Shown: positions 5,533 to 49,831 of the stretch, one piece after another | Layout of the letters: each line of letters begins with the position of its first letter | Numbering within the stretch: position 1 is the stretch's first letter | NCBI RefSeq assembly: GCF_022045235.1 | Contig: NW_027266266.1 | Location: 5,890,001-5,954,000, forward strand | DNA from: Haliotis cracherodii | Taxonomy: Eukaryota | Length of the DNA stretch: 64,000 nucleotides | Reading direction: 5' to 3' | The notes under the pieces: model-generated | What the model was told of the DNA's origin: nothing | The model's database searches: none | Seen by the model: only the letters and a program-made list of their open reading frames with translations | Program-made: the position numbers and the translations under genes

Positions 5533-5610
5533 TTATCCTGTCGTGTTGTATGCATCCTTCCGAAATCCTCCAGTTGACTCCGGTTTAAACTGGATCACGA
5601 TGAAAACATA
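5533..5610 (-). pseudogene. Orphan, 5'-truncated last exon of a GRL gene (YVFIVIQFKPESTGGFRKDAYNTTG*)
   Basis: Paralogous to GRL exon 4 at 6953-7051 and followed by the same 3' flank. The acceptor and first codons are missing. Confidence 0.8.
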
Positions 5611-6384
5611 ACATAACATAATTGTACTGATAGGTTCTTAATGCAGTGGTTGGTAGCTCTGTTTTGATATCTGGAATTCATTGTCCAAATTTGAAAACTA
5701 CAGCATTTTATCGAGAGTGAAAATGCGCGAACATGATAACAGACATGAAGTAATATACAAAGTAAATGCAAGGGAGGATAACGGTGACTGTGTCAACTAC
5801 TCTTTTCCGCCACAAAACCAAGCTTTGAATTAAGTTCATTGATTTCTGTTCCACGTGGATAAGAGAGTGGGTGAGTGCGGGAGTGAGTGAATCGTTATCT
5901 CGCCTTTGTCATGACGTACTAACTCATAACGGTAAACGTTGGCTGCACTATTGGATATAACACGATCCTCATGTTTCCTTTGAAAGGTTGGTGCTGATAC
6001 ACGTTCATACAGTCATCCACAACATTTTATCTCACTTAAAATTAAGATTCTTACTTCTAAGTGGTTAAGGAGTGAGCAGTTTCCCAGTGAAAGAATTTCC
6101 AGTACATACAGCAAACTAGAGAAAGATAAATATGGTTTCAATTTTTGTTTACCAAGCTGAGGTCGTTATTCATTCTCTAGATCACAAGTAGATCTAGACT
6201 CAGTCAGATTCAGGACATGATGCTTTTACCGTATTATTGCTGAATTTGGTGTAGCACCACATCCACGTTTTGGTCCTCCAATGGTGAGTGAGTTAGTGGG
6301 TGAGTATGTATTGTTTGACATTTCCCAGAAGGATGACAAAGTGGACACAATTTATGGATAACACCTTCTTTATTATACTGTAAT

Positions 6385-6424
6385 AGCGACGTTTCGGTAT
6401 AGATCCTGATACCGTTGTCAAGCA
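6385..6424 (-). ncRNA. Minimal hammerhead-like motif in a solo Penelope terminal-repeat remnant
   Basis: Minus strand GC-TTGACAA-C-GGTATcAG-GAT-CTATACC-GAAA-CG-TC-GC followed by AATAAA. Same motif as the end of the Penelope element at 25755-25794. Confidence 0.5.
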
Positions 6425-6952
6425 AGCCTGAATACTGAACATTAAACAGAATTATATATGGAAGGTAAAGGATTAATAGTAACAACAATTTTCATATATG
6501 AGGGAGTTTAACATGAGTCGGTTATATAGAAACAACAGAAGGATAATATTGTAACGACATGATGGACAGAGAACACATGATGACGAAGCGAATAATACGG
6601 GAAGACAATTCAACCGGATTAAGTATACATACTCGTAGGTGGTAAGAGTTGAAAAAAACCCTATTGCTTGAGTTCGGGGATGAGATGCGATAGCCGTGAT
6701 CTCTGTTGATTCATGGCTTGTGGCGGCGAATCTTGACTGCTTCTCTTTGTTTTCTCTCATTATTCTTGGTATCATTTCTTTTAGATTTTAACTCTATCTA
6801 TTCACATTCGGAGACCATTATAACAACTTAAAACACGGCATGCGTTTCACAAGCATGCTTTGCAAAGCGACGATGTCAAAACATTACAAAGTAAAGCTGC
6901 TCAACCATTAGTGCACAAACTTCAAGCGCAAGTCAAATACGACTTGATGCAG

Positions 6953-9900
6953 TTATCCTGCCGTGGAGTTTGTTTCCTGATGCATTCCGTCAGTTGATTC
7001 CGGTTTAAACTGGATTACGATGAAAACATAAGCGAGGAGGGTCCCGATGATCTGTGTCAACAAAGAAGAAAGGTAATGGAGAACAGTATACATTGAGGAC
7101 AAAAATGTCTTGATCTATATGAAGTCCACGTACCTTTAGGATCGTGTCCTTCGTGATGGTCATTAGGCCTAAAGCACTGATTCCGATATGCCGTTGAGAC
7201 AACTTGTTTGCGAACAGTGTGACCTGGGTGAACAATTCGTAAGAAAGAGGGAATATTGACAAGACACTTCATAATCATTAAATAACATATATATTGTTTA
7301 ATTACATCATCATAATTTAAACGTTCCAAAATGTTATGTTTATCATTGGCACATATTAACATTTATCATATCAAATATGTTCAGGAGCATTTCATTTCAA
7401 GTTTCGGGTGCTTGAAGACAATTATTCAATTTAACAGATAAAACATGTAGGATGTTTAACACATAAAATTTCCAATCTGTTAAATTAATATCGTATATGG
7501 TTACGTGTTCCTATGAGGCATTGTCGATCCCCAGTATCCGATGTATCCATGAGTGTATTAGCGAGTGAATTGTGTCTTATATATGCCAAAGTGATGACTG
7601 GGAATATTTTTGTGATCATTGAGGTATGATTCGAGAAACTGACATGCCAAATGTGTCAATCCGAGAAACCAAACTACCACACGTTTGTTTGCACACAGCA
7701 ATATTTCAGCTATATGACTGGATTATAAATATAGTCAAGTGTGGACCAAACAATCAAGTGATTGACATCATGAGCTCCGATCTACGCAATTTGAATACAA
7801 TTACCACGCCTAACGGACTCAGTAGGCTAGGACAGAGGGCGGTTGGTCCAAGCTGACAAATTCAGTTTCAATCATGAGAGAAAGTTCCTGGAAACATGAA
7901 GACATAGTTGCAAAGTGACGGTTAGAATGAACCCAAATGGATACGGATTCATGCGTTGACTCTGATTGTTTCATTATAACGATTTACCAGTGCAATAATT
8001 CTGTCTGGCATCTTTCTCCCAGCCAAGTCATGCAGAATGTTCAGAGGTCGGTGTGCCTGAACAAAAATATTCCAGTTACTTTGTTAAAAAACTAATCTTA
8101 GTTCATAAATAAAACATTTAAATTGACACAAGATCTGATTACATAATACATTGAGTATAACGAAGTCACTGGTGGTAGCTCTACGTAGGCCATTCCTTTA
8201 ATTATTCCCTCGTTATGCCTTAAGTCGCAGAGACACATGGAACATTGCTACAAGCTTTAAGTGGAAACAATACAATAATCACCCCCGTTTGTAATCCCAT
8301 ACGCATTATTGTTACTATATTATTGTTTTATATGAAAAAATTGTAGACTTACGATATACGCTTTATTGTTACTACTTTCCTTAACATGAAGGCCCTGTTA
8401 CTACATTTATTTACATTAAGGCCTTGTTGAATCACGATACACGCATTATTGTTACTACTTTCCTTAACATGAAGGCCCTGTTACTACATTTATTTACATT
8501 AAGGCCTTGTTGAATCACGATATACGCATTATTGTTACTACATTCATTTACATTATGAACTTGTAGATTCGAGACATACGCATTAATTTTACTACATTTA
8601 TTTACATTAAGACCCTGCAGAATCATGATATACGCATTACTGTTACTACATTCATTTACATGAAGACCTTGTAGAATCACGATATACACATTATTTTTAC
8701 AACATTCATTTACATGAAGACCTTACATGAAGACTACGATATATGCATTACTGTTATTACATTTATTTACATGAAGACCTTGTAGAATAACGATATAAGC
8801 ATTATTGTTACCAGATTATTTTACATGAAGACCTTACATGAAGACTACGATATATGCATTACTATTACTACATTCATTTACATGAAGACCCTGTAGAATC
8901 ACGATATATGCATTGTTGTTACAACATTTATTTACATGAAGACCTTGTAGAATAACAATATAAGCATTATTGTTACTACGTTCATTATTTACATTAAGGC
9001 CTTGTAGATTCCCAATGTACACATAATTGTTACTACAATCATTTACATTAAGACCTTGTAGATTCAAGACATAAGCATTGATTTTACTACATTCATTTAC
9101 ATGAAGACCTTGTAGAATCAAGATATATGCCCTATTGCTACTTCATTTATTTACATTAAGATGCTGTAGAATCACGATATACGCATTAGTGTTACTACAT
9201 TCATTTACATGAAGACCTTGCAGAATTACGACATACGCATTACTGTTACTACATTCATTTACATGAAGACCTTGTAGAATTACGACATACGCATTACTGT
9301 TACTACATTCATTTACATGAAGACCTTGCAGAATTACAACATAAGCATTACTGTTACTACATTTATTTACATGAACACTTTGTAGAATAACGATATAAGC
9401 ATTATTGTTACTACTTTCATTATTTACATTAAGGCCTTGTTGATTCACGATGTACGCATTATTGCTCCATTTATTTACATGAGGACCTTGTAGAATCACG
9501 ATATTCGCATTATTGTAACTATATTCATTTACATTAAGACCTTGTACTATCACGATATAGGCATTATTGTTACTACATTCATTTACATGATGACCTTGTA
9601 GAATCTGGAAATACGCATTATTGTTACCAGATTCATTTACATTAAGACCTTGTACAATCACGATATATGCATTATTGCTACTACATTCATTAACATCAAG
9701 ACCTTGTAGAATCACGACATAGGGATTATTGTTACCAAATTCGTTTACATAAAGACCTTGTAGAATCACGATATACGTATTATTGTTACCACATTTATTC
9801 AGATAAAAAACCTTTTAGAATCACGATGTGTGCATTATTTTCACCACATATATTTACAGTATGACCTTGTGGAATCACGATATACGCCTTAATGTTACGA

Positions 9901-12158
9901 CATTCATTTACATGAAGACCTTGTGGAAATACGACATACACATTATTGTTACGATATTCATTTACATGAAATCTTGAAGTATCACGATATATGCATTATT
10001 GTTCCTTTGTTAATTTACATGAAGACCCTGTAGATTCACGATATACGTTTTATTGTTACCACATTTATTTACATGAAGACCTTGTAGAATCATGATATAC
10101 GCATTATTGTTACCACATTCGTTCACATGAAAACTAGACTAACATATAGTCTCTGAAATGAACATATCATACAGAAAATAAAAATCTAATAAAAAGGGAG
10201 CCCAGTGATTCTCTTCATTCTGATACTGCAGTAATCTAGACTTGCCAAACATTATAGACTTGCATGGGCTGTAGTTGATATAAATGTATCAGGGTCTGTA
10301 AGACAGACTACATGAAAACCTTTAAGAATCACGATATGTGTATTACTGTCACCACATATATTTACAGTAAGACCCTGTAGAATCATGATATGCGCATTAT
10401 TGTTACTACATTGACTTAGATGAAGACCTAGTAGAATCACGCCTTAATGTAACGACATTCATTTACATGAAGACTTGATAGAATCATGATGAACGCATTA
10501 TTGTTACTTCATTCATTTACATCAATAACTTGTAGGATCACGATATTCGCATTATTGATACTACATTCATTTACATAAAGACCTTGTAGATCCCGATATA
10601 GGCATTATTGCTTCCACATTTATTTACTTTAAGACCCTTTAGAATCACGATATGTGCATAATTGTTATCACATTCATTTACATAAAGACCTTGTTAAATC
10701 ACGATATACGCATTATTGTTACTACATTCATTTACATCAAGACCTTGTTGAATCACGATATACGCTTTATTAGGGTTCGCCATATCAACAATTAACCGTT
10801 GTACTGCTTTTATTCAGTGGAACCCTGCTAGTCCGAACTAAACTGCCGGGCAAAACATAGTATATCCCCGTGTTGGATGGTGGCCAAAAATGAAGCAAAA
10901 GAGAATGGTTATCCGATGGTGATGAATTTGATACGGGTATAAAAGTTGTATTTTGGACCTTAAGTCTGCAGTGTTTCGGCGAATGTTTCCAGACTACTGG
11001 CGTTTTAAGACCGTTGTGTAATGCTTTGGTCAAATCCAATCTTCAAGAGTATATTTTCTTTTGCCCGGCAGTTTATACCATTCTCAGTGAAATAGACCGA
11101 GATGATAACATGTCCAAACAAAAGAATCATAGAACCCCTTGTATTCATATAGACATTTCATAAATTTATCATTCAGAATATGTGATTTCTGTCTAACAAG
11201 GTTTCAATGTACAATTCCACAATTACATTGTAACACTCACCGCTTCGTGCAGCCGGATACCAAGGTAGGTGAGAGTGACGAGATGCAATGTGGAAATGTA
11301 CACAGCAAATGCCGCAAAGACAAAGTAACCAAGCGAGGGGACGTCGTTGATGAAGAAGTACAGGCAGAAACACTCAATCAGAAAAGAGCTGAGATAGGCA
11401 GCAGCCACGTGTATGGATATGAAAGAACACACATATTCCACCAAGCCTGTCAGTGTTGCATGGTATCCTCGAATGTCCTCAATATCCTCTTCTTTGACGG
11501 ACCCTTCAGATGCCCGTAACAGTCTCAGGGTGCAAACATCATATTCATAGGTGAGAAGGAGGGAGATGGACAAGAATAGAAGCAATAACGAATGGTATAT
11601 CAGAATGATATAGCCAATAATTATCACATTCAAGAAAAGTAAAGGCCAATATAGTTCCTTGGATGTTTCAAGCGTCATGCCTGTATTGATTCCATTGGCC
11701 ACACAGGTGAAAGCCGCGAAGATTATTATACATATACATGCCCTTTTTACCCTCTTCCTCAATGTAGTGTTTGGAACACAACTGTTAAACTTCAACCGTG
11801 CTTCATGGAGACGTTCGCGGAATATGCGTAGCTTGCTGTGGATGTTGGTACTGAGGCCCCAGAAGGTTATTGATAACAGAATTACAATGTGACTTGTTAG
11901 CAAGATACTTGTTTTCGTGATCGATTCAGTATACGATGTTATCACTTCGATAAACAATAGAATGAAAAATATGCACACCAAACTTGAATATATGCTGGAA
12001 GCAACAGAGGAGACGGTGCACCGTTTTGGTGACTTCGACTGCTGATAGTCCCATGATAACCCAGACGATGCCATCAGTCTCTGGACACTTGTCAATGTTT
12101 CCTGTACATCATCTGTATCACTGGATGTACCAACGGTATTTTGAAAAACCTTCAACAT
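6953..12158 (-). CDS. Gustatory receptor-like (GRL/7TMIC) chemoreceptor, copy A, 391 aa. Exons 12158-11241, 8056-7988, 7223-7134, 7051-6953
   Basis: Exon 1 (306 aa, six hydrophobic segments) ends HEA|gtgagt. Exon 2 is AHRPLNILHDLAGRKMPDRIIAL, exon 3 VTLFANKLSQRHIGISALGLMTITKDTILK, exon 4 IIGTLLAYVFIVIQFKPES...AG*. All introns are GT-AG, phase 0. The TM7 [T/A]YhhhhhQF motif is the GR/GRL signature. Confidence 0.88.
7690..7850 (-). mobile_element. Partial SINE-like element of the same family as 48820-49090, in GRL-A intron 2
   Basis: Reverse complement contains TTGCGTAGATCGGAGCTCATGATGTCAATCACTTGATTGT...ATAGCTGAAATATTGCTG, matching the body and tail of that family. Confidence 0.6.
8298..10770. 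repeat. 54-bp minisatellite, about 40 diverged units, in GRL-A intron 1, interrupted near 10135-10310
   Basis: Consensus TACGCATTATTGTTACTACATTCATTTACATGAAGACCTTGTAGAATCACGATA. It gives 18-aa periodic ORFs on the minus strand. Confidence 0.95.
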
Positions 12159-16123: not shown

Positions 16124-16410
16124 TTATCCTGCTGTGGTGTTTGTTTCCTGTTGCATTCCGCCAGTTGATTCCGGTTTAAACTGGATCACGATGAAAACAT
16201 AGGTGAGGAGGGTCCCGATGATCTGTGTCAACAAAAAAGCAAAGTAATGGAACTACAATGGGTTATTGGTAAAGATATATACATAGTATATATACTATGT
16301 TAGAGTGCACTGTGACGTCAAAACATCGTAACGGTAAACTTGTACACTTGAAATCACATGCGTGAAACCGACTGAGTAAATTATACAGCTCATCTTTGGA
16401 CTTTTGTATT

Positions 16411-16468: not shown

Positions 16469-19400
16469 CTATATATATATATATATTGTTTATGTTTCAG
16501 CGAAAAATCTAAATAAATAATTCAACGTACCGTTAGGATTGTGTCCTTCGTGATGGTCATTAGGCCTAAAACACTGATTCCGATCTGACGTTGAGACAAC
16601 TTGTTTGCGAACAATGTGACCTGGGTTCGTGAGAAAAAATTAAGCTATTGATAAGACACTGCAAATTTATTAACTTACATAGATAGAGACATAGATAACA
16701 ACATAATAATTGAAACGTTTCAAAATGGTTATTTTTTAAAGTAACATCATTTAACAGCATTTATCAAATGAAACATCTTCAGGAACATTTATCATGTTTA
16801 AGATGCTTGATGACGTATATCAAATTTAACAGATATAACGTGTAAAGTAAGAAATGAAACCTGGAAACATGAAATGTGTGAAGGTGAGATTGTGTGTTAC
16901 AGAAGCATGTGGGTGGTTGAGGACGTCTCTGGCGGGTCTAACGGACAGTAAGGCCATCTCGGTGAGAGAATGTACATGTATTTGTTGCCTGACACAGGAC
17001 AATCCTGAAGAATTCTGGAAAATTCTGAAGCAGGGCAGAGCTACCAGTAATATAAGTCAGGAAACTAGTCCCCAAGACTGGAGCACACACTTCTCTAATC
17101 TGTTGAATGTTGATATGGGTGAGGTTACGTGTGACGCGAGCCAACCCGAATCATGTATACAACCGGATCCATACACATCTTCAGGTCTGGTGTGAAGGCT
17201 GACCCGAACAATTACAGTGGCATATCACTGATAGACTCTTTGTATAACAGATACACTTCCATTTTAAACAATCGGTTACGACAGTGGTGTGATCAAAATT
17301 ATGTAATTCATGAGATAAAAGCAGGATTCAGAACAAATTATTCCACTGCTGATCATATATTTTCACTCCATGCAATGATCCAGAAATATGCCTGCAAAAA
17401 GAAAGTTACTGTTTGTTTATTGATTTTTCAAAAGCTTTTGATACTGTTAAACATGACGTATTACTATCGAGCCTTAAAAATGGGGAAATCTTCAATATTC
17501 TTTCATCAATGTATTCACATCTATCAGCCTCTGTAAGAACTTCAAATGGATTGTCTAGTTACTTCCATTGTTATGTTGGTACTCGTCAAGGATGCATCTT
17601 GAGTCCCCAGATGTTTATTATTTTCATCAATCAACTTATTAGTATGATGGAAGAATATGTTGGAGAAGGTATATATATATATATCTCCTGATGCAAATAA
17701 TCTATTTACTCTCATGGTTGTTGATGATGTTTCTGCAGTCGCCGATACTGCATTACAATTACAAAAATAGAGAAATTGGTTTGGATTTTTTTGTCTATTA
17801 ACTGGTATGAAAGTAAATGTGAAAAAATTAAGGTTGTTGTGTTTTGTAACCTTGGGGCACTGCGACACTATGCGAATTGGTCTCTTCACGACCAGAAGCG
17901 TGATGTGGTGTCACTTTATAGATATTTAGGTATAGTATTTACACCCAGACTAGTTTGGACAAAAGCACAGTCCTGCCTTGCATCACAAGCAAATAAAGCT
18001 CTAATGGCAATATACAGGTATCAAAAGAGAGTAGGTAATATTAATTGTACTAATCTTTACAGGGTTTTTGATGCAATGGTTACACCAATATTGTGCTATG
18101 GGTCATAAATCTGGGGAGCAACATATTGCAAAACAATTGAAAATGTTTAGATAAGAATGTGCAAATATGTCCTGAAAGTTGGTAAAAGTTCATGCAATAG
18201 TACAGCACTGGGTGAATGTGGAAGAGCTCCACTTCAGCTCACATGCATGTCACGGTCAGTTAAGTACTGGTGTAGATTAATCACTCTGGTGAGTGAATGA
18301 GTGAGTGAGTAAGTGAGTGAGTGGGGTTTAACGCAGCTTTTAAAAGTATTGCAGTTATATCGGCGTGTCAGCTTAATGTGGAAGGAAAGCCCGAAGTGAT
18401 GCAGGTCTCAGTCGTTTACCACTTTTTGTGAAACCCACGAGCATGGGTATGGTGCTGACAAACCTAGAAACATAATCGGGGCGAAATTGGATTCGAAGCC
18501 ACAATCACAGGTTTTTGGAGTGCCCAAAGAGACGCAAGTCTGCAAAGCGAATCGCGGGGCCCAAGACGACTGGGCAACCGCGTCCCCTCAATCTGGATAG
18601 AAATAGGCTACCTCATCAATGCTATTAAATGTGAAAGTCTCTTGATGATGCTGGCAGAGTCATATAGGCTACACATATCAAACATATTCTATTTAATTTG
18701 GGTTTGGTTTTGTATGGATTCACCAGTATGTTGGGAATATTAACATTTTTATGAGATTTTTTTAAAGAAGACTTGTTGATAATTTTAAACAAAATTGGTT
18801 TTCTACACTACACGCCTCTCATTAATGCATCTTATGCATTGCTATTCCTTTACATTTGTAAATTCATTTCACAAGATTTAGATGTGGCAATTTTAGACTT
18901 ATGACAGAAACTTTAATATACCATACCATTTAAGACTATGTCCTCATTGTAGGCTAAATGATAAAATGGACTTAGAAGACGAGATTCATATTTTACTTGT
19001 ATATGATGCAATCAGCGTTTTCATATATATGTATATATTTCAGATGAGGTTGAAGTGTGGTCTCTAAATGAATTGTTAAATGTTTTCTTACCATTGCAAT
19101 CATTCTGTCTGGCATCTTTCTCACAGCCAAGTCATGAAGAATGTTCAGAGGTCGGTGTGCCTGAATACAAACATTCCAGTTACTTTGTTAAAAAAAATAA
19201 AACTTTTAAATTGACACAAAATGGGATTACATAAAACACTGAGTCTAGGGAAGCCACTGGTTGTCCCTAGGTCGCCCATTAGTTAAATCTTTCTCTCGTT
19301 ATGCCTAAAACTGCAGTGACACATGGGACATTGCTGTAAGTGGAAACAATACTCATCCGAGTTTGTAATTCCAAAGGAATTATTTTTACTGCATTCATTC

Positions 19401-20828
19401 GCTTTGAGACATTGTAGAATCGCGATATACTTTTATTCGGGTTCTCAATGACTATAGATAACAATTATTGGTATTTTACTCTGTGGAATCCTGCTAATCC
19501 GAATTGAACTGCCGGGCAAAAGAAAGTATACACCCATGTTTGATGGTGGCCAAAATGAAGCAAACAAGAATGGTTATTCAACGGTGATGTATTTGATAAG
19601 GGTATAATGGTTATATTTTGGACCTGAAGTTTGCAGTGTTTTGATGTTTGTATTCAGATTACTAAAGTTTGCAGAACGCTTGTAACACTTTAGTCAGATC
19701 CAATTTTCAAGAGTATACTTTCTTAGCCCGGGGGGCTATTCCACTCTCATTGACATCGACCAGGATGATAAAAGGTCAAAACAAACGAAAAATGTAACAA
19801 CTTGTAATCCTATTCACATTCCATAGTTTTATTATGCGGAATATGCGATTTTCTGTCTGACGGGGTTTCAACGTACAATTTCACAATAACATTGTAACAC
19901 TCACCGCTTCGTGCAGCCTGACACCAAGGTAGGTGAGAGTGATGAGATTCAGGGCGGAAAAGTACAAAGCAAATGCCGCAAAACCAATGTTCAAAATGGA
20001 GGGGACGCTGTTGATCAGGATGTACAGGCAGAAACACGCAGTGAGGAAGCAGCAGAGAAAGGCGGCACCCACGTGTATGGATATGAAGGAACACACATAT
20101 TCCACCAAGCCTGTCAGTGTTGCATGGTATCCTCGAATGTCCTCGATATCCTCTTCTTTGAAGGATCCTTCAGACGCCCGTAAAAGCCTCAGCGTGCAAA
20201 CATCATATTCATACGTGAGAAGGAGGGAGATAAACAAGAACAGAAGCAATAGGGAATGGTAAAGCAGGATGATATAGCCAGCGTGTATCGCATTAAAGAC
20301 AAGTAAAGGCCAAAATATTTCACTGGATGGCTCAATCATCATGCTTAAGCTGATTCCACTGACCACACATGTGAAAGCCGCAAGGATTTTTAAACATATA
20401 CATGCCCTCTTTACCCTTTTCCTCAATGTAGTGTTTGGAACACAATTGTTAAACTTCAACCGTGCTTCATTGTGACGTTCGCAGAATATGCGTAGCTTGC
20501 TGTGGATGTTGGTACTGAGACCCCAAAAAGTTATTAATAACACAATCATAATGTGACTTGAAATGGCGAGACCTGTGTCCGTGAAAGATTCAGCTGAAAT
20601 GTACGATGGTATCACCTGGATAAAAGATAGAATGAAAACTATGCACACCAAACTTGAATATATGCAGGAAGCTACCGAGGAGACGGAGCACCTTTTTGCT
20701 GACTTCGACTGATGATAGTCCCATGATAACCCAGACAACGCTATCAGTCTCTGGACACTTTTCAATGTTTCCTGTACATCATCTGTATCACTGGATGTAT
20801 CAACGGAGTTTTGGAAAACCTTCAACAT
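16124..20828 (-). CDS. Gustatory receptor-like (GRL/7TMIC) chemoreceptor, copy B, 393 aa. Exons 20828-19905, 19160-19092, 16620-16531, 16222-16124
   Basis: Same structure as copy A (924/69/90/99 bp, phase-0 GT-AG introns). The last exon is IIGTLLTYVFIVIQFKPESTGGMQQETNTTAG* with the canonical TYhhhhhQF. Confidence 0.9.
16411..16486. repeat. (TATC)n/(TA)n microsatellite
   Basis: Direct inspection. Confidence 0.95.
16990..19010 (+). mobile_element. Degenerate non-LTR retrotransposon reverse transcriptase (CR1/L2/RTE-X-like) in GRL-B intron 2
   Basis: Frameshifted RT motifs: DPNNYSGISL, AGFRTNYSTADHIF, FIDFSKAFDTV, GTRQGCILSP, YRYLGIVF, PILCYGS, and a C-terminal EDEIH. Confidence 0.88.
18290..18590 (-). 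mobile_element. tRNA-derived SINE with a V-like domain, nested in the LINE remnant
   Basis: Reverse complement of the family at 51861-52138, with an (ACTC)n tail. Confidence 0.85.
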
Positions 20829-29263: not shown

Positions 29264-32198
29264 TTATCCTGCCGTGGTGTTTGTATCCTGCCGCATTCCA
29301 CCAGTTGATTCCGGTTTAAACTGGATGACGATGAAAACATAGGTGAGGAGGGTCCCGATGATCTGTGTCAACAAAAAAAGCAAGGTAATGGTTATTGGGC
29401 TGTAATGAAGAGATATATTTTGTTATAGGTTTCAGCAAGGAAAAGAGATGAATAAATAAATTCAACGTACCGTTAGGATAGTGTCCTTCGTGATAGTCAC
29501 AAGGCCTAAAGCACTGATTCCGATCTGACGTTGAGATAACTTGTTTGTGAACAATGTGACCTGCGTGAACAATTCGTGAGAAAAATAAGCTACTGATAAG
29601 AAACTACACATTTATTAGATGTCATATATATTATTTCATAACAACATAATAATTTAAATGTTCCTATTTAATTTTAACGTTTTTTATCATAAGTAACAAC
29701 ATTTATCAAATGATATATCGTCAGGAATATTTATCATGTTTAAGATGCTTGAGGACAATTATCAAATTTAACATATATAACATGTAGGGTGCTTCATTAA
29801 AATCAATTAATATTTGTATCAAATCTGATTATGTGTTCCCAATGGGGATAATGTGGCAGTATGCATCCCAAGTACCAAAAGTATCTTAGAGTGCATGAGT
29901 GAGTGAATCTAAGCTTTATCAACCCAGTCAAATGGTCCTGTATAAACATAACAGATTCTACTGGGCGTAAAAGGCAAAATAGAGGCGGAAATTATATGAA
30001 TGGATCCCTAATCTGTGATGACACCAGGTGTCGCGAAAAGAGTAAGCATGTACTGCCCTGCCTGTAGCATTTGTCACAGACACATTTTGCATGACAAAGT
30101 ATCTATTTGTTGCCTGACACAGCATATCAGTGCCCTGTAATGACTGGGTATGTTTGTTTTAATTATCATTGAGTTGTGAAGCGAAAAATCAGAACAGCGA
30201 AAAATCAGATCTGGAAGAGGACAGCGGGATAGAGCTAGTAAAGTCACTTACTGCAAGTTTCAAACATTAGAGGAGTTTCCTGCGAACTGGAAGGCACAGT
30301 TTGCAGTGTGAGTTAGAAACGAAACCTTGAAACATGAAATGTGTGAGGGTGTTATTGTGTGTTGCAGAAGCATGTGAGTGTGTGAGGACGTCGGTTGTTG
30401 CTTAATGTTTTATATTCTTTGGGATATAAATATTATTATAGTATATATTTATATACAACAGTAATCCAGATATGTTCAAGTGCGGTTTATTTTTTCCCTG
30501 ACCAGTGGATCCCTAAGCATTTAAATCCGAAAAGGACATTAATCTATTTAGCCAATGCAGGGAATACAATTCGAACGCACACATGCACGTACGTTCACAC
30601 ATAGAGAAAGATTAACTACAAACAATTATACTAATAACGTATTAAATATCATACATCATATGTCTTAACCGTTCTTATATACCACATTGGCATGCATAGA
30701 AGAACCGTTACATTTTAATAGATGCAGTTTCTGTGCAGTCGGTGTGCCAATATTTTAGTGTCTTTTTCAAACAAGTAAAGTCTGGTTTTCAACATTGTAG
30801 TACATGTATGGAAACTGCTACAGAAAAGCATGCATTCCATGCAAAAGTTGACTTACATGCAAGCCCCATGCATTTCACTACCCAAGAATGGGTATAAAAA
30901 CATGTGCGTTTACGGGATTTCATATGCATTGTTTAGCATCGTGCTGACAACAACCACTCAGAAAAACAACAAAATGACGCAATTATTCAACATTACGAAA
31001 TGCCACGCCTGTCCGAAAATGAGCGTCTGCGAGCCATTGGTATGCTTGAAGCAGGATCGAATCAACGTGATGTTACAAGACAATTTAACGTCCACAGAAA
31101 CACCATTTGGTATTTATGGCAACGTTGGCAACAGACGAATGCAGTCAGAGACTATCGACGGAGTGGCAGGCCACGCGTAACCAATAATCGACAAGACAAC
31201 TGGATTCGAACAACAAACCTTCGAAATCGATTCCAGCCAGCAATAGTGACTGCAAGAATCATCCCCGGCCTTCGACGAATATCTTCACAAACCGTACGTC
31301 GTCGCCTCAGATGTGCATGGATTGTCCCCAGAAGAGCCACCAGACGTCCCATTTTGACAGGAAACCACCGTTAAGCATGTTTACAGTGGTGGAGATAGCG
31401 TCTACGCTGAACGGCCATGCAGTGGGGACAAGTTCTGTTCACTGACGAGTCTCGTTTTCACCTCAGGCACAGCGATGGACGGATTCGAGTGTACCGACGT
31501 CGAGGTGAACGTTACGTCAATCATTGTGTCATGGAAGAAGACCGGTTTGGGGGCGGCAGCGTTATGGTATGGGGTGGGATTACAGCAAGACAGAGGGCCC
31601 GTTTGATTTTAGCAGAGGAAAATCACTATGGACAGCGCTACCGCGACGATCATCGGCCCTGTTGTTCTACCGTTTTTGCGTCGTCATGGCCCAGGCATTA
31701 CCTATCAACATGACAACGCCCGGCTTCATATGGCTTGACTTGTTCAGGACTCTCTTCAACAAAACAACGTGAATGTCATCCCCTGGCCGACTCGCTCCTC
31801 TGATCTCTCACCAATCGAGCACATGTGGGATGAGATTGATCGGCGCCTTCGACGTCAACCATGGGTTTCACAGACACTCCAGGAACTTCGAAACATGCTC
31901 AAGCAGATATGGACAGATATCCCACTGGACTTTTTGCGACGCCTGGTCCATTCCATGGGACGAAGATGTGTTGCTTGCATCGCAACCAGAGGTGGACACA
32001 CACGCTATTGATTTGTAAATTGACATTTTGCCATGTTCATGTTTTTTTAAGGAATCACGCATTTTCTGAAGTCAGTATGTCAAATTAAATCATTTGAACA
32101 GGAGTCTTTTATCTGTTGCAAACCGTAATTGTTTCAGATATGGTAAAAAACATAACTTTGCATTAAATCATATTCAATGTCACAGGAACTTTTGTTCA

Positions 32199-32272: not shown

Positions 32273-33908
32273 CAGATGAGGTTAAAGTGTGGTCTCTTAA
32301 TGAATTGTCATAATGTTTTCTTACCAGTGCAATCACTCTATCTGGCATCTTTCTTCCAGCCAAGTCATGCAGAATGTTCAGAGGTCGGTGTGCCTGTATA
32401 AAAACATTCCAGTTACTTTGTTTCAACATTAATTGTAATTTATCAATACAAAATTCAGACTGACACAAAATCGGATTACATAATACAACGAAGCCACTGG
32501 TGGTCCCTAGGTAGACCATTATATAAATCTTTCTCTCGTTCTATCACTAAAACTGCAGTGACACATAGAACATTGCTACAAATATAAATACCCCGTTTGT
32601 AATCCCAAAGGAATTATTATTATTATTCGCATTGAGACACTGTATCACGATATACACTGTATTAGGGTTTGATATCGATAGATAACCATTATGGGGATTT
32701 TACTAATCCGAACTGAACTGCCTGGCAAAAGAAAGTATACTCCTATGTTGTAGGGAGGCCAAAAATGAAGCAAGCTAGAATGGTTATTCGATGGTGATGC
32801 ATTTGATACGGGTATACTGGTTGTATTTTGGACCTTAAGATTGCAGTGTTTCGGTGAATGTATCCATATGAATAACGTTATGAGTATTCCTATACACATT
32901 CCATAGATTTGTTATTCAGAATATGCGATTTTCTGTCTGACGGGGTTTCAATGTACAATTCCACAATAACATTGTAGCACTCACCGCTTCATGCAGCCTG
33001 ACACCAAGGTAGGTGAGAGTGATGAGATACAGAACGGAAAAGTACAAAGTATATGCCGCAAAAACAATGTTCAAAATGGAGGGGACGCTGTTGATCAGGA
33101 TGTACAGGAAGAAACACGCAGTGAGGAAGCAGCAGAGAAAGGCAGCAGCCACGTGTATGGATATGAAGGAACACACATATTCCACCAAGGCTGTCAGTGT
33201 TGCATGGTATCCTCGAATGTCCTCGATATCCTCTTCTTTGACGAACCCTTCAGATACCCGTATCAGTTTCAGCGTGCAAACATCATATTCATACGTGAGA
33301 AGAAGGGAGATGGACAAGAACAGAAGCAATAACGAATGGTATAGCAGAATGATACAGCCACTATATATTGCATTCAAGACAATTAAAGGCCAATATAGTT
33401 CATTAGATGTTTCAGTCGTCATGCTTGTAGTGATTCCAGAGGCCACACATGTGAAAGCCGCGAAATTGATAAAACATATACATGCCCTCTTTACCCTTAT
33501 CCTCAACGTAGTGTTTGGAACACAACTGTTAAAGTTCAACCGTGCTTCATTGAGACCATCGCAGAATATGCGTAGCTTACTGTGGATGTTGGTACTGAGG
33601 CCCCAAAAGGTTATTGATAACAGAATCACAATGTGAGTTGATAAGGTCATACTTGTGTTCGTGAAAGATTCAGCTTTCGAATACGATGGTATTCCCTGGA
33701 TAAAAGATAGAATGAAAACTAAGCACACCAAACTTGAATATATGCAGGAAGCCACCGAGGAGACGGAGCACCATTGAGCTGACTTCGAGTACTGATAGTC
33801 CCATGATAACCCAGACAATGCCATCAGTCTCTGGACACTTTTCAATGTTTCCTGTACATCATCTGCATCACTGGATGTACTAACGGTATTTTGGAAAACG
33901 TTCAACAT
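29264..33908 (-). CDS. Gustatory receptor-like (GRL/7TMIC) chemoreceptor, copy C, 393 aa. Exons 33908-32985, 32393-32325, 29560-29471, 29362-29264
   Basis: Same 924/69/90/99-bp exon structure with phase-0 GT-AG introns. The last exon is IIGTLLTYVFIVIQFKPESTGGMRQDTNTTAG*. Confidence 0.9.
30700..32200 (+). mobile_element. Tc1-family transposon (defective transposase 31000-32011) in GRL-C intron 2. Left boundary uncertain
   Basis: MPRLSENERLRAIGML...GRPRVT, VLFTDESRF, GGGSVMVWGGI, QHDNA and WPTRSSDLSPIEHMWD...GGHTRY*. One stop and a frameshift. Confidence 0.92.
32200..32270. repeat. (TA)n microsatellite at the right end of the Tc1 element
   Basis: Direct inspection. Confidence 0.95.
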
Positions 33909-35036: not shown

Positions 35037-35586
35037 AGACAATACAAAATTGTATATAGTAGGTGAAGGATTAACAGTGGCAACACTGTTCATGTATGAT
35101 AGAAATTAACATGAGTCGGTTATATAGAAACAACAAAAGGATAATATTGTAACAACATGATGGACAGAAACACATGATGACGAAGCGAATAAAACGGGAA
35201 GTCAATTAAACCGGATTAAGTATACATCGGTGGAAAGATTTGAAAAACATTTGGAGGCCATCACAAAAACTTAAAACATAACATGCGTTTCAAAAGCGTG
35301 GTTTGCAAAGCGACGATGTCAAACCATTATAAAGTAAAACTGCTCAGTCATTACTGCCTAAACTTCAAGTGCAAGTCAAATACGACTTGATGCAGTTATC
35401 CTGCCGTGGAGTTTGTATCCTGCTGCATTCCACCTGTTGATTCCGGTTTAAACTGGATCAAGATGAAAACATAGGTGAGGAGTGTACCGATTATCTGTGT
35501 TAACAAAGAAGCAATGAAATTGACTTGTAATTGCTTATTGGGCAGTACTGAAGCTAAATATATTCTGTTATAGGTTTCAGCGAGGA

Positions 35587-35747
35587 GGGCGGTCAGGTAG
35601 CCTAGTGGTTAAAGCCTTAGCTCGTCACGCTGAAGACCCGGGTTCGATTCCCGACATGGGTACAATGTGTGAAGCCCATTTCTGGTGTCCCCCGCCGTGA
35701 TATTGCTGGAATATTGCTAAAAGCGGCGTAAAACCACACTCACTCAC
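35587..35747 (+). mobile_element. Short tRNA-derived SINE with an 11-bp target site duplication (TTCAGCGAGGA)
   Basis: A box TAGCCTAGTGG, B box GGTTCGATTCC and (ACTC)n tail. TSDs at 35576-35586 and 35748-35758. The matching site in GRL-C intron 3 is empty. Confidence 0.92.
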
Positions 35748-36002
35748 TTCAGCGAGGAACAGAGATGAATAAATGAATTCAAGGTACCGTTAGGATCGTG
35801 TCCTTCGTGATAGTCATAAGGCCTAAAGCACTGATTCCGATCTGACGTTGAGACAACTTGTTTGCAAACAGTGAGACCTGGGTGCATGACAAATATGATA
35901 TTGACAAGACACTACATATTCATTAAATTACATATATTTTGTATAATGACAACATAATAATTTACACGTTCCAAAATAGTTAGATTTGACATTAGTAACA
36001 TT

Positions 36003-37010: not shown

Positions 37011-37754
37011 GTTAGTTTGTTTTAAACTAATCACAGTTGATAATAAAACATTTTAAATTGACAAAATAATCGGATTACATAATACACGGACTGCAACAAA
37101 GCCCCTGGTGGTCAACAGGTGCCCAGTAGTTAAACATTGTTCGTCACAGCATATGAGGCCAAACTCATGTTCTCGAGGGAGGGGACCTCGTTGATGATTT
37201 TGTACAGGCAGGATTAGGAAGGAGCAGAGAAAGGGAGCAGCCACGTATATGGATATAAAGCATCACACATATTCCATCTAGCCTGTCAGTTGTCCATCGT
37301 ATCCTCGAATGTCTTCAATGTCCTCTTCTTTGAAGGGCCGCTCAGATGCCCGTTACAGTCTCTGGGTGCAAACATCATATTCATCGGTGAGAAGGAGGGA
37401 GATGGACAAGAACAGACGCAATAGGGAATTAGTTAGTAGAGTGACACAGGCACGGTATATCATACTCAAGACAAGAAAGGCCAATATATTTCATTGTGTA
37501 TCTCAATCGTTATTGCCTGCACTGAACCCAGGTGAAAGCTGAAAGGATTATAAAACATATATGCCCTCTTCATCCTTAGCTACCGAGGTATTGGTGCACC
37601 GTTTTGCTGACAACAACTGCTGATAACCCCATGATAACCCGGACAATGTCATCAGTCTCTGGACACTTGTTTCAGTGTTTCCCGTACAGCATTTGTATCA
37701 CTGGATGTACCAACGGTATTTGGAAAACGTTCAACATATTCGACAGAGAGGACA

Positions 37755-39219: not shown

Positions 39220-41890
39220 CATGTGATAGATTCAGTTGTGGCAGAATGAGAGACCGTAGGAGAGTAACTTGAGTTAAGGGAGGTTTTGGTTGGCAACCAG
39301 CTATTTTTCACCTGAAAATCGACTATCATTTTGATGCTTTAGTTTTACTACCTCTGATTTCCTTTGCCACTCACGGCAAGATGTGGAGCATGCTACGTGA
39401 TTGTCAACACAGTTGCAACACTTGACCTCTTCTTAACATATGTGTATCACTTCTAAATGCCTTTCAAAGAATAATGGTCAAACTGCCAATAATGGCCGTG
39501 GAGTGGATTGGGGACATACACATTTGCTCTGATACTGAAATAACCCTCCATAATGCATTGTGGAACTGAAGTATGGGCAACCGTTAACAGATATGTATTG
39601 GTGATGCTGAAAGCATTGTCTTTGTTTTGATAAATGCAAGCGACAAAGCGTTCCAAATTCAAAAGAAGTTTAAAAAAGCAGAATCGATTGTACGATGCTG
39701 GCAATATCAAGAGCATCTGTTCATGAATCACTATCAAATAGTATTGATACCAAGTGTTCATGAAAAGGTAAGCGTATCCTGTCCCACCCGTGGCACCTAT
39801 CACAAACACATGCAAAGGCAAGTCAATTGTTCCTCCCCAAAGAAACACGAACAGTGTTCCGACATGAGTTCAGTGTCCAGCGAACAGTCGCAGAAACGTC
39901 AACACTGATAACTGACAAAAGCGTCAATATGTTACTGTAACACCGAAGATAAGAGTATCATTTTTCGATTTTACCACAATTTACAGCAAATGAATTTAGT
40001 TTAATTGGTTGATGATCTGAAGCCTTCTACCGGGAGCAGGCCTGTATTGGAAAATATTGTTATCTGAATATTGTTATTCAACACGGTTCTTTTGCATTTC
40101 AGGTTTAACGAGGTTGTCGTAGTGACATGGTTAAAAATAACATTTAACATTTTTGTTACCCGCCCACTATCGAGTGTCTACAAAGAACAGAATACAGGAT
40201 GTTATACTCCAGCAAATATGACACAAATAGTTATTTTTGTATTCCAAATTAAATGACACAACAATGACAACAAACAAAATTTAGAGGTCGACTTCTGGCA
40301 TTAGAGAATTAGTGCAGTCAAGTACGTTATAAACAAGACGAACCAATGTAATAAGTTTATGACAGGACTTTGTAACCGATTGATAGAACCGGGACAGTTC
40401 TACCACGCGTCTAGTTGAAGTTGGTGGTTGAAGTGTCGGCTTCGACAAAGAATCACTAACCCTAACCCTAACCCTAACCCTAACCCTAATCCTAACCCTA
40501 ACCCTTACCCGAACCCTAACTCTTCAGTGCACTCAACCACCAGAATCTCCTAATCCACAGACACGGCGGCGCAACTCAGGCAAAACAAGTTGCCCACAAT
40601 TTGGTCGCTTCTTACAACCAGCAATGAGATGCAGGGGACACATTCAACACCATTCCCCCCTCCCATCAGAGTAATACAGAGCATTATCATTCATTCAGTT
40701 ATTTATTTTACATTCAAATTTCTAATCCCCACCTGAGAAGCATAAGAGTTAGACAGGGAATGACAAATTTTGGATGTGGCGTGTTTCCCCAAATACGTTA
40801 TCAACCATTTACTTGGCCTAACCACCTGATCCATCTTATGTCCTGTATAGTGTCCTGGGGATCTATTCTAACCAGGAATCCCCTCGTCCAAGCATTGCCC
40901 ATGACAGTCAACGAATACTTCTTAATGCGGTATCGAACTGTCCTGATCTGATTGATCTTTTAAGCCATTTTTTACTTTTGCCTTTGGGTATATATTAATA
41001 CTGTTTGGAATAGCGCCAGAGGCACTGGTGTGATTGATGAAATATTGAAAATATAAATGTTCATATTATCAACATATATATAGTGTGTATATATATACAC
41101 ACTGTACAATACCTCAAGGATGAGACGTTGCTTCGTGTGTTTAGAACTACAGACAGCTCTTTGTGTTCTTCAGGGTTTCTCCACTTACAATCAATGTATT
41201 GACTATGAACGTATCTAAGTTACCCGTTTTAATCAGTCGAGCCTGCATTTCGCTGAAAACATGTGATTCAATATTTAAAAAGTTGTTCCACTATTAATGA
41301 GCACTTTTAAATGCGTTTCAAAGGCATGGTGTCCACAGCGACGATGTCAAAACCTCTCAAACTAAAGCTGTTTAGCTATTAGTGCCAAAACTTCAAGTTC
41401 AAGTCAAATACGACTTGATGCAGTTATCCTGCCGTGGTGTTTATATCCTGCCTCATTCCACCAGTTGAGTCCGGTTTGAATACATAGGTGAGGAGGGTCC
41501 CGATGACCTGTCAACAAAAAAACCCAAGGTTATGGTTATTGGGTTCTAATAAAGAGATATATTATGTTATAGGTTTCAGCAAGGAAAAGAGATGAATAAA
41601 TTCAACGTACCGTTAGGATAGTGTCCTTCGTGACAGTCATAAGGCCTAAAGCACTGATTCCGATCTGACGTTGAGATAACTTGTTTGTGAACAATGTGAC
41701 CTGCGTGAACAATTCGTGAGAAAAATAAGCTATTGATAAGAAACTACACATATATAAAATGTCATATATATTGTTTTATAACAACATAATAATTCAGATT
41801 TAAACATTACGTCAATCATTGTGTCATGGAAGAAGATCGGTTCGGGGGCGGCAGCGTTATGGTATGGGATGGGATTACAGCAAGACAGAT
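39220..41890. repeat. Segmental duplicate of the GRL-C 3' region (matches 25591-25700, 27625-29660 and 31512-31592)
   Basis: Long near-identical colinear blocks, including the CCCTAA tract, GRL exons 3-4 and a piece of the intronic Tc1. Confidence 0.9.
41424..41700 (-). pseudogene. GRL pseudogene, copy E. Exon 3 41700-41611; exon 4 41507-41424 with a 15-nt in-frame deletion in TM7
   Basis: Exon 4 reads VIGTLLTYVFKPDSTGGMRQDINTTAG*, lacking IVIQF. No exon 2 was found upstream. Confidence 0.85.
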
Positions 41891-45160: not shown

Positions 45161-45740
45161 CGTTGTATCATGCTACACCCGCTATGTCAGCCCCTTTATT
45201 ACTCGATTTATAACTGGCTGAATATTTTGCTTTGCTGGGAATAGAATATGAAAGATATACAACAAAGAAATTTGTTACAGATTTGGACAACGGACATCAA
45301 TTACGATTAACAGACATTGAATACCACGTTTGGCAAACATGATGATGTTATCAGAAACAATCGGTTGGTTCACTAATGCTTAATAATGTAATAAAATATT
45401 GATATTTCTGAAATACCTCCTTATCAACTCGTTAATGACACAGGTAAATACTTGATTGTCATACCAAACATTATATTCCAGAGTAGATATGGGCGTTTGA
45501 TCTTTTTCCTATTTAAATCAAATACATTTATGTTTACACAATGCTTCATAGTCACATCATGATGTGTGAAATCAATGTCGTTGTGACAACGAGGATATAT
45601 ATAATCATATTTATTTCTATCATCATGACAAACTACCCATAATTACCACTGACTTTAATCCGTCCAGTTTTGCTTGAAGCTTTAAGCACGAGTTATTTCA
45701 TTCACATTTGTCAGTAACAGTGTCTGTTCCTTACTTCAAC

Positions 45741-46200: not shown

Positions 46201-46606
46201 GCTACCCATTTTTATGCTATACAGTTTTTCTTTTTCTTCACACACGCACGCACGCACACACATACACACACACACACACACACAGACGTTCGACCGAATA
46301 ATATCATCTGCTGACTTCAACTGTTCACCTAATTTCCACTAATGTGTGTTACATGGATAATATGTTCATGGGCTTCTCCACTGAATGTATAGTGGGAAGG
46401 ACTACTTCAGTTGAGGATAAGTAACATAAATAATGATGATATTATTATGATATTATTGTCATTATTATTCCTTCAGATTATTAAAAAAAGTTGTTATGTT
46501 TTCATGTTAAACATAGAGAAAGAGGTATGGAGATTTTTAGCATAGACATTGTTAAAAATATTTGTTTGTTGTTTAATGGCGCACTCAGCAAGCTAAGGAT
46601 ATTACA

Positions 46607-46682: not shown

Positions 46683-48819
46683 AAGTGATATAAAAAATGT
46701 ATAGTCGCTATTCTTAAAAGTAAGCATATGTTAGATTTATCAACCAGAAATATTGCACACCAAAGGATAGTCATGTATCATGACACTATTCTATGTCGAA
46801 GTCAACGATATTTGTGTATGCTATTGCTACATGATTGGTTATGACACGGATTCGTCATGATAAAGCAATGAGAAATTGACATTTGATGATATAAGACAGC
46901 TACGCGATAGATCGCAAAGAACAAAGAGAAGGAAGCGATATTTATTTCACGATAAAACATTGTTCTATCGTGACGTCATTTATGGAGATTCGAACATGCA
47001 CTCACAACTTGAGGCCGTCCTAAAGTTGACGTTACTTGTGAGAGGGAAGTGTCTAGTGAGTTGTTATCAATAGATGTAGCTGGGGAAGGTAGATAAATGC
47101 AATGCCCGAACAATCGCACCCGAAAGTGAAAGCGAAATGACAATCGGTATTGGGAGAAAAGGTACAAATAATCGACGTGAAAATTGTGAGAATATGCGGG
47201 AAATACCAAATTCAAACCCTCCTGTTCATAAAATGGATTGTTCTGGCATTGCCGCGGTCGGATTCTATTCGGGGAGTCATCATTATTTAAGTACGGGTAA
47301 ATATTTGTAAAGCGTGTACTTTTTCCTAATTAATAAACACACGGTACAAGTCAAAATAGAGAATTGCATCAGACATCATTTTGGTCATTGATACATCAAA
47401 CCTGTAAATGCCGTCTGCACGTCCAACACCAAGCCCAAGCCAGGGCCGGAATCCTTTAAACCCCCTGAGCGCAAAACTTGCCGAAAACCAAAGTTCTGTT
47501 TATTATTACATACATTTACCCCTAATCTAAAGTAATCTTTACTATTTCTGACAGTAATGTGTGATAAGTCACGCACCAAACCTATACTCTTGATATACAT
47601 GTTGTTCTCACTAAAAAAGAAACTATTGGGCTAACAAGATACGTATATTAATGTGCCATGCTTTCCTGATGTGCTATCATTCAGATTTGAAATAATGACA
47701 TAAATAGTTGCCACTCATCCTTCAATATATTTCAAGGTCGGGTTAATCACAAACATATTTGAATATATACAACAGCTATACTTACTTATCTTACAGCTAT
47801 ACATACTTATTTTTTCTTAAAGGCATCAGGTTGTTTGTCATATAGACCCCGTTACAAATATGTCCAATACAGCACATAATTTGGCAAAATGAAGAAAGTC
47901 TCTTGGCTCCTTTTTCTATATTTTATAACTATTGTTTAACAACTGTTTTTTCTCTGTAAAATATGTTCATTTCAGAGATTAGATGTTATTCTAGCCTCAT
48001 GTCTGTTGTACGTTCACTGCATCAGCGTTGACATTAAAACGATATTTACATATATAAATACATACAGATGAAATGCTTAGCATTTATCTTTTAAGGAAGA
48101 ATGTGGGACTTGCTTAATACATATACGTATATGTCGACATATATGTATGGATATTTGGATGAATATAGATATACCTCCTTATAGATAGTGATCGTAGATG
48201 ATTGTGGTTAAAACGAGAAACAATATTTAAATTTAAGAGGAGTCCAAGTGAGATGGAAATTTCAGTCTGAACCTGTTGAACATCGAGGCTTGTTTCATTT
48301 GGGGCTATAGCATTGCAGTAAGGCCTGGGCGGAAGGGAAAATAATATGGTTCAGGGACTGTGAGACAAACTACTTCACGGTCTCTATCGCCGTCGTGATC
48401 TTTAGAGCTACGAAAGTAGAGCCATCTCAGACAGCGACTCGACACCTGTTTGCACCCATCAGATGCCAGTCACTACAGTCACTACTTCTCTCTCCAAACG
48501 AAAAAAATACGAAAAATGTCGGATGTGTATATTTTTAATCTAATTTACTAAAATTTAAAGTAATTATATGTGTCTCATGTTCAAAAATGTATTAATGGTA
48601 TCTGTGATGCTGGTACCGTTTTGTGGCCATTGTGTAACTTTTGTGGAGTTATAACGAATATCAAATAGTCTTGAAATGTGGATTGTAAAAGAGTTCATCA
48701 TTGAACCATATGCAGTCTAACCCATTTAATTGGCGTGTATGGATATATTATCCATTTACTTATACACACTTATTATGGACATATACAGAATGTTATTGGA
48801 CCTTATTATTAAAAAAAAT

Positions 48820-49090
48820 ACCCTAGAAGATCCGGGGTAGGATAGGTCTTCAGTAACCTTGCTTGCCGTAAATGGTGACTATACTTTTCGTAAAAGGCGA
48901 CTAAAGGGATCCGGTGGTCAGACTCACTGACTTGGTGGATGCATGTCATCGTATCCCAATTGCGTAGATCGGTGCTCTTGATGTCAATAACTGGATTGTC
49001 TAGCCCAGACTCGATTTTTTACAAACCACCGTCGTATAGCTGGTATATTGTTGAGTGCGGCGTTTAACAACAAACAATCAAACAAAAACT
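48820..49090 (+). mobile_element. SINE-like element with a non-tRNA structured head and (AAAC)n tail
   Basis: GAAGATCCGGGGTAGGATAGGTCTTCAGTAACC...GGCGACTAAAGGGATC...ATAGCTGGTATATTGTTGAGTGCGGCGTTTAACAACAAAC. Multiple copies in the window. Confidence 0.8.
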
Positions 49091-49167
49091 ATTATTAAAC
49101 ACCTTCCAACAATGAAAAATTAAACTTTTATTTTCTATAGATCTATATTTAGTTTATTAAACATTGA

Positions 49168-49831
49168 CTTGCCCTTTTTACCCACTTCCTCAATGTAGTG
49201 TTTGGAACACAACTGTTAAACTTCAACCGTGCTTCATGAAGACGCTCGCAGAATATGCGTAGCTTCCTGTTGATGTTGGTACTGAGACCCCAAAAGGTTA
49301 TGACACTGTGACTTGAAATGGCGAGACTTGTGTCCGTGAAAGATTCAGCCACCAAATAGAATGCTATACTCTGGATAAAACATAGAAATATACGCACGTC
49401 AAACTTTAATATATGCAGGAAGCTACCGAGGAGACGGTACACCTTTTTGCTGACTTCGACTGCTGGTAGTCCCATGATAACCCAGACAATGCTATCAGTC
49501 TCTGGACACTTGTCACTAGGGAATTGGTTAGTAGAGTGACACAGGCACGATATATCATACTCAAGACAAGAAAGGCCAATATATTTCATTGTGTATCTCA
49601 ATCGTTATTGCCTCCACTGAACCCAGGTGAAAGCTGAAAGGATTATTAAACATATATGCCCTCTTTATCCTAAGCTACCGAGGTATTGGTGCACCGTTTT
49701 GCTGACTTCGACTGTTGGTAGTCCCATGATAACCCAGACAATGCTATCAGTCTCTGGACACTTGTCAATGTTTCCTGTACATCATCTGTATCACTGGATG
49801 TACCAACGGTATTTTGGAAAACCTTTAACAT
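49168..49831 (-). pseudogene. Scrambled GRL exon-1 remnants (two joined partial copies)
   Basis: ATG at 49831 (MLKVFQNTVGTSSDTDDVQET...). The part 49515-49690 shares the deletions of copy D. The part 49168-49515 is a second exon-1 piece (FWGLSTNINRKLRIFCERLHEARLKFNSCVPNTTLRK). Confidence 0.85.

Follow-up and report, generated by a model that had tools for sequence, protein, structure and literature searches.

A tandem cluster of intact and decaying gustatory-receptor-like genes in the black abalone genome

Introduction

Insect gustatory receptors (GRs) are the closest relatives of known structure for the genes described here. Drosophila Gr64a, Drosophila Gr43a and Bombyx Gr9 have been solved as tetrameric, sugar-gated cation channels. 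Here we analyze a stretch of 64,000 nucleotides from the black abalone, Haliotis cracherodii (contig NW_027266266.1, positions 5,890,001 to 5,954,000), which we call the window. The window carries three intact genes and several broken copies of the gustatory-receptor-like (GRL) family. A first look at the letters without database searches, called the sequence-only reading below, had placed an actively evolving cluster of such genes at window positions 5533-49831. The span is correct, and what was claimed for the genes within it is partly supported, as described below.

GRLs occur widely outside arthropods. Members from Lottia, Patella, Crassostrea and Aplysia belong to the same family as the window genes, within which the abalone subfamily forms a clade of its own. 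Robertson 2015 and Eyun 2017 are cited for describing GRLs, including those of Mollusca (in PMC7746228), and Saina 2015 for describing them across animals (in PMC5850775). An annelid genome paper from 2025 counts two GRLs in each spionid species (PMC11730519), whereas the abalone repertoire of at least 54 is much larger. Within the library of papers searched, none deals with the GRL repertoire of abalone or of gastropods. The apple-snail "GRL" belongs to GRL101, a G protein-coupled receptor (GPCR) family, and is unrelated to gustatory-receptor-like genes.

Public databases also name members of the family. NCBI calls the abalone proteins "gustatory receptor for sugar taste 64a-like", an automatic name that is no evidence of sugar sensing, and UniProt labels the limpet relatives "Gustatory receptor". 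Given these names and the literature on animal GRLs, the kind of gene is already known and the locus is less novel than the sequence-only reading had claimed. The new elements are the extent of the abalone repertoire, its pattern of constraint and the gaps in its public annotation.

Results

Three intact genes share one exon structure

The list of open reading frames (ORFs) for the window, which contains no N along its 64 kb, includes three mutually similar minus-strand ORFs of 311-330 codons and a shorter related ORF near 49.4 kb. As had been noticed from the letters, such a list reveals only exon 1. To build gene models, we ran tblastn with the exon-1 ORFs and with every small exon and then read the splice borders. 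The internal and terminal small exons were placed by tblastn guided with full-length abalone proteins from the public collection. The introns are also conserved between the paralogs, and open frames in conserved blocks could not locate exons 2 and 3.

The result is three intact minus-strand paralogs, genes A, B and C, of 391-393 codons each and with the same four exons. Exon 1 of gene A (11241..12158, 306 codons) runs from ATG to RLHEA directly before the GT of the donor site, and it encodes six hydrophobic segments, corresponding to transmembrane segments 1 to 6 (TM1-6). It is followed by exon 2 (7988..8056, 23 codons, flanked by AG and GT, phase 0), exon 3 (7134..7223, 30 codons, phase 0) and exon 4 (6953..7051, 32 codons and a stop). 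Gene B consists of exon 1 at 19905..20828 (308 codons), exon 2 at 19092..19160 (23 codons), exon 3 at 16531..16620 (30 codons) and exon 4 at 16124..16222 (32 codons and a stop). The exons of gene C have the same four lengths as those of gene B and lie at 32985..33908 (308 codons), 32325..32393 (23 codons), 29471..29560 (30 codons) and 29264..29362 (32 codons and a stop).

Exon 1 ends in RLHEA followed by GTGAGT in all three genes, the introns are all GT..AG, and there is not a single internal stop in the exons. All exon lengths are multiples of three, hence all introns are phase 0. The exon-1 proteins of the three paralogs are 77-81% identical (tblastn), far above chance.

The last exon carries the motif of the seventh transmembrane segment (TM7). 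The sequence-only reading had named this motif as TYhhhhhQF. Genes B and C both read TYVFIVIQF. In gene A, a detail that reading had passed over, the T has become an A (AYVFIVIQF). In all three genes the last intron lies six codons ahead of the motif. On the minus strand, matches to TYVFI[VL]IQF lie at 16.2, 29.3 and 35.5 kb. The strict pattern TY.....QF overlooked gene A and the two remnants F and G described below; tblastn with exon peptides recovered all three.

Repeats also lie in the introns. A 54-bp minisatellite (about 30-40 units, 72-80% matches) at 8479-10771 occupies most of intron 1 of gene A. Because of it, this intron measures 3.2 kb compared to 0.6-0.75 kb in genes B and C, and it gives rise to a spurious, repetitive entry in the ORF list at 9143..9769. 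A short interspersed repeat (18307-18597) is inserted in intron 2 of gene B; copies of it, 75-86% identical, lie at 50.4-52.1, 59.5 and 60.7 kb.

The genes belong to the gustatory receptor family

We are confident that the window genes are members of the GR/GRL family (Pfam PF08395, 7tm_7; 7TM ion channel superfamily), since profile, motif, intron phases, topology and predicted fold all agree. The profile match expected from the sequence-only reading is found for full-length homologs and stays below threshold for single exons of the window. On 7tm_7, for which the cut-off is 26.6 bits, six full-length Haliotis proteins with identities of 55-63% to gene B reach 39-82 bits. Five of the six also exceed the cut-off of Trehalose_recp. 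All six match 7tm_6, the profile of insect odorant receptors (ORs) and Orco, but much more weakly than the GR profile. Searched alone, exon 1 of gene C (E 0.31 or 1.3, model positions 19-307) and exon 4 of gene B (E 0.12, model positions 352-368) match 7tm_7 below the threshold, and these matches are co-linear with the model. Exon 1 of gene A and exon 1 of gene B, searched singly against Pfam, do not match 7tm_7.

Further searches lead to the same family. A phmmer search with the Haliotis rubra homolog P0003 reaches the solved Drosophila Gr64a (E 9e-8), and in a language-model atlas P0003 falls among 7tm_7 clusters. In a family alignment of 54 sequences, conservation is 90% or more at just two positions apart from the start Met, G347 and Y371. 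Both are present in A, B and C, and Y371 is the Y of the TM7 motif.

The full-length abalone homologs share with insect GRs the matches to 7tm_7 and Trehalose_recp, and the window genes share the TYhhhhhQF motif (with A for T in gene A) and a last intron six codons before this motif. The TM7 motif and the 3' introns are recognized hallmarks of animal GRLs (PMC7746228; PMC5850775). That the 3' intron positions match those of insect and cnidarian genes is taken from the literature (PMC7746228) and not from an alignment of our own.

Within the family the abalone genes stand apart. Among 1.84 billion representative proteins we find 187 clusters at E<=1e-3. Only 3 of these reach E<=1e-30, thus the abalone genes form a well-separated subfamily. 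The close protein matches in the public collection are all from Haliotis. Outside Haliotis, the nearest named relatives come from limpets (Patella, Lottia), a freshwater mussel, a nemertean and a rotifer, at 21-33% identity.

Predicted topology and fold resemble those of insect receptors

The sequence-only reading expected seven transmembrane segments with the N-terminus inside the cell. Hydropathy of the window genes agrees: exon 1 encodes six hydrophobic segments and exon 4 a seventh. If the N-terminus is placed inside, the inner side carries 19-25 Lys and Arg residues and the outer side 1-3. The predicted charge distribution therefore fits an N-terminus-inside topology, which is inverted compared to GPCRs.

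The expected likeness to Orco and GR structures is found as well, for a model of the homolog P0003. The AlphaFold2 model, computed from the 54-sequence alignment, has a predicted local distance difference test score (pLDDT) of 84 and a predicted template modeling score (pTM) of 0.85. In it, a helix at the N-terminus is followed by six long ones and by a last helix that is split (S0-S7a/S7b). Compared to the PDB with Foldseek, all 23 matches at E<=1e-3 are chains of insect GRs, ORs or Orco. The 22 matches with E<=1e-4 extend over the full length with template modeling scores (TM-scores) of 0.65-0.79, while the matches that follow have E>0.1 and TM-scores <0.2. For insect GRs the TM-score is 0.70-0.79, and for MhOR5, Orco, AgOR28 and AaOR10 it is 0.65-0.73. 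In the structural alignment the abalone homolog is only 11-15% identical to the solved insect chains, and the deposited GR chains have 450-490 residues compared to about 392 in abalone.

These results bear on the idea that the window encodes ordinary GPCRs with the usual N-terminus-outside topology. GPCRs would also have seven hydrophobic helices, and one rotifer relative carries the depositor label "G protein-coupled receptor". However, neither Pfam nor Foldseek returns a GPCR family or structure, the significant matches being GR, OR or Orco throughout, and the positive-inside count favors an internal N-terminus. On the Pfam matches, the Foldseek matches and the Lys and Arg distribution we reject the GPCR reading, to which we give practically no chance of being right.

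The model of P0003 is also predicted to assemble. When four copies of residues 172-395 were co-folded, the interface score (ipSAE) was 0.56, while the best of three controls reached 0.00. Contact agreement between the tetramer runs was at least 84%, and partner pLDDT at least 69. The ipSAE mark was reached in calibration by 21 of 30 proteins solved as one-chain pairs and by none of 23 solved as single chains; since this calibration used two copies of mainly microbial proteins, it holds only roughly for four copies of P0003. The confident contacts lie in residues 313-344 and 229-236, which belong to S7a and to the inner ends of S6 and S5. The same elements make up the anchor domain of Orco, and the predicted four-fold assembly through S5-S7a resembles that of insect GRs.

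Broken copies lie between and beside the intact genes

At least three decaying copies had been proposed, and a tblastn search finds four, which we call D, E, F and G. All of them are on the minus strand. Pseudogene D retains remnants of exon 1 (37145..37735) with several stops and a large deletion, visible as a gap in the match at about residues 54-160. Exons 3 (35877..35788) and 4 (35494..35399) of D, which together span 35399..35877, are both still open. Exon 2 of D was not found by tblastn with exon peptides across the window. Another short interspersed repeat is inserted in intron 3 of D, at 35500-35780.

Pseudogene E (49155..49831) comprises two pieces of exon 1, 49831..49673 and 49510..49158, covering residues 1-53 and 24-146. 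Its exon 1 is disrupted by a stop, a frameshift and a partial duplication. Remnant F (41427..41700) contains an intact exon 3 (41700..41611) and an exon 4 (41507..41427), which has lost IVIQF through an in-frame deletion of 15 nt. Remnant F may belong to E as its 3' end or stand on its own, so that the two may represent either one gene or two. Remnant G (5536..5619) is an orphan, 5'-truncated exon 4 that has no splice acceptor and lies 1.3 kb below gene A. Together, the remnants represent two to four further genes.

Constraint differs between the inner and outer parts of the protein

Among A, B and C the synonymous divergence (dS) of exon 1 is 0.17-0.26 and the ratio of nonsynonymous to synonymous divergence (dN/dS) is 0.48-0.63; overall, exon-1 dN/dS is 0.42-0.66. 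The value of dS shows that the duplications that built the window array are not recent. dN is smaller than dS across exon 1 (Fisher p 3e-4 to 0.045), hence the copies have been under constraint since they were duplicated.

This constraint is not evenly distributed. We divided the residues by hydropathy and topology alone. Across seven paralogs on the contig of the window, median dN/dS is 0.92 (0.65-1.19) in the outer third and 0.36 (0.18-0.46) in the remainder. Variable residues gather at the outer ends of TM1/2, TM3/4 and TM5/6; in the inner loops and in exons 2-4 the paralogs hardly vary. In insect receptors, the ligand pocket sits in the outer half. Hence the pattern fits a tuning of the copies to different ligands.

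Alternatively, A, B and C could be unexpressed relics awaiting disabling mutations in an array that is dying. Two to four of their neighbors are already broken, transposon fragments and the minisatellite have invaded their introns, the motif of gene A has lost its T, and no public protein identical to any of the three was returned. However, each of the three copies retains its four exons and its six splice sites in working order despite a dS of 0.17-0.26. Furthermore, dN lies below dS in exon 1 and the inner two thirds have a dN/dS of 0.26-0.46, as purifying selection after duplication would leave it. We therefore consider a dying array quite improbable.

In a maximum-likelihood tree the seven paralogs on the contig of the window form one group (support 90/90), whose sister is a pair of H. 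rubra and H. asinina sequences (100/98). This placement suggests that the duplications postdate the split from the H. rubra and H. asinina lineages, with other species being incompletely sampled. The array arose by local duplication and decay. The birth-and-death expansion proposed from the letters is thus borne out by intact and broken copies, by the values of dS and by faster change on the outer side. To call the cluster actively evolving is nevertheless an overstatement for the window, where synonymous divergence is around 0.2, even though a sister cluster elsewhere in the genome contains copies that are 99.8-99.9% identical.

The genome contains more than ten clusters

The window lies on contig C3 of an assembly of 1.18 Gb. 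Of the subfamily found in the window, the genome contains 12 intact first exons, distributed over C3 (seven), C11 (four) and C56 (one). A fifth match on C11 is partial. All 12 intact first exons end in RLHEA directly before GT, like those of the window.

The family as a whole is considerably larger. A count of copies across the genome had been suggested as a check, and a whole-genome search with a profile built from the family alignment recovers, in more than ten clusters, at least 56 first exons that are near-complete, of which 54 are free of stops. These counts are a lower bound, because 103 of 211 candidates were scored. The clusters of first exons lie on C3 (six places), C67, C45, C11, C36, C12, C7 and C56, and many exons of the TM7 region adjoin the near-complete first exons. 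Pfam's own model detects far fewer copies in the genome than the alignment profile.

One of these clusters stands out. Five first exons (loci L010-L014) lie at C36:691120-748205 with a spacing of about 13-15 kb. The middle three, 99.8-99.9% identical, follow one another at intervals of exactly 13,056 bp, and the outer two are 95-97% identical to them. Either these copies are a very recent tandem amplification or they are an effect of the assembly. To judge by these near-identical copies, the family as a whole is still duplicating.

Public annotation covers this repertoire poorly. Three NCBI proteins of H. cracherodii, P0007, P0008 and P0017, are found letter for letter in paralogous loci of the genome, which also settles the origin of the stretch, a probable mollusc in the sequence-only reading, as black abalone. 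With lengths of 219-231 aa, these proteins begin at an internal Met, close to residue 163 of a first exon that is open over 308 codons. The public models at the corresponding loci, L001 (C3:6.456 Mb), L004 (C3:12.37 Mb) and L007 (C11:18.46 Mb), are consequently truncated at the 5' end and do not contain TM1-3. In the public protein collections no protein identical to A, B or C was returned. With models that are truncated or absent, automated surveys will undercount the family.

Discussion

A proposed tetrameric channel tuned by its outer half

What could these genes do? The best reading, which we think is probably correct, is a tetrameric ligand-gated channel that is tuned by its outer half and used in chemoreception. 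By analogy with the insect proteins, each intact gene would produce a subunit about 392 residues long that crosses the membrane with seven helices, its N-terminus lying inside and its C-terminus outside the cell. Four subunits would surround a central pore. As in the homologous insect GRs, ORs and Orco, the last helix (TM7b, with the TYhhhhhQF motif) would line the pore, and a cytoplasmic anchor bundle formed by the inner ends of helices 5-7 would hold the subunits together. A small molecule binding in the outward-facing half of each subunit would then open the pore. The likeliest role of such a channel would be the chemoreception of waterborne or contact cues. Since the paralogs differ mainly in the outward-facing half, they most likely detect different ligands.

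Insect ORs are arranged similarly, in tandem arrays that contain pseudogenes and diverge in the ligand-facing part, as in abalone. A conserved co-receptor of the Orco type did not turn up in abalone, where no search was aimed at one.

Several points weigh against this proposal. Searched singly, the window exons all stay below the Pfam threshold, and the motif of gene A has an A where a T is expected. The models of fold and tetramer describe a homolog from H. rubra, which is about 60% identical to the window proteins, and what they establish is likeness, not function. The tetramer itself may pass because the model remembers solved GR and Orco complexes. Relaxed constraint, instead of selection for new ligands, could explain why dN/dS approaches 1 in the outer third. 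Lastly, a GRL of the cnidarian Nematostella is reported to act in body patterning and not in external chemosensation (Saina 2015, cited in PMC5850775).

The cnidarian gene also speaks for an alternative, in which the abalone genes encode true GRL channels with another role, such as development, internal nutrient sensing, or the sensing of light or temperature. The family does include members that sense light or heat, namely LITE-1 and GUR-3 of nematodes and Gr28b(D) of the fly. However, GRLs that are not chemosensory are, as far as is known, usually few and conserved. In abalone, at least 54 genes lie in tandem clusters with broken beside intact copies, and divergence is concentrated in the outward-facing half; chemoreceptor arrays show such a pattern. 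For these reasons we regard a role other than external chemoreception as unlikely, if well worth keeping in mind, and prefer channels that sense external chemicals.

A broader and more tentative proposal concerns the abalone lineage. Abalones, and perhaps vetigastropods generally, may have independently built a large repertoire of insect-style ionotropic chemoreceptors of the GR type, whose ligand-facing halves would be diversifying. It would then be these channels, and not GPCRs or ionotropic receptors (IRs) alone, that detect algal food and larval settlement cues. We rate this as a serious possibility that is somewhat more doubtful than not. To our knowledge, the receptors for feeding, spawning and larval settlement on coralline algae have not been established in abalone, and the black abalone is a species of conservation concern. 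If the proposal is true, more than 50 GR-type channels would provide a concrete set of candidates for the senses behind feeding, spawning and settlement. They would also add a second large radiation, outside arthropods, of this family of channels and be useful for understanding how ligand pockets diversify.

Other elements in the window

The remaining features of the window are not receptors of the GRL family. Plus-strand exon fragments of a Cys-loop (nicotinic-type) receptor lie between E and F at 45708-46314 (Neur_chan_LBD, E 4e-15) and include a 109-bp tandem duplication at 45806-46023. Transposon debris is found at 1043-1411 (-), 17153-17536 (+), 25912-26697 (-), 31000-31374 (+) and 36100-36546 (+). 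It includes transposase pieces of the Tc1/mariner type (DDE_3 and HTH matches), one of them within intron 2 of gene C. Several ORFs in the debris are without a Pfam match, and two of these show, by eye, a GIY-YIG-like motif as in Penelope-like elements.

Near the end of the window, a TRIM-like gene on the minus strand (61275-62489) consists of a single ORF of 404 codons, in which B-box zinc fingers and a TRIM coiled coil are combined with a RING-like N-terminus. Another minus-strand ORF downstream of it (58675-59286), without a Pfam match, is perhaps part of this gene.

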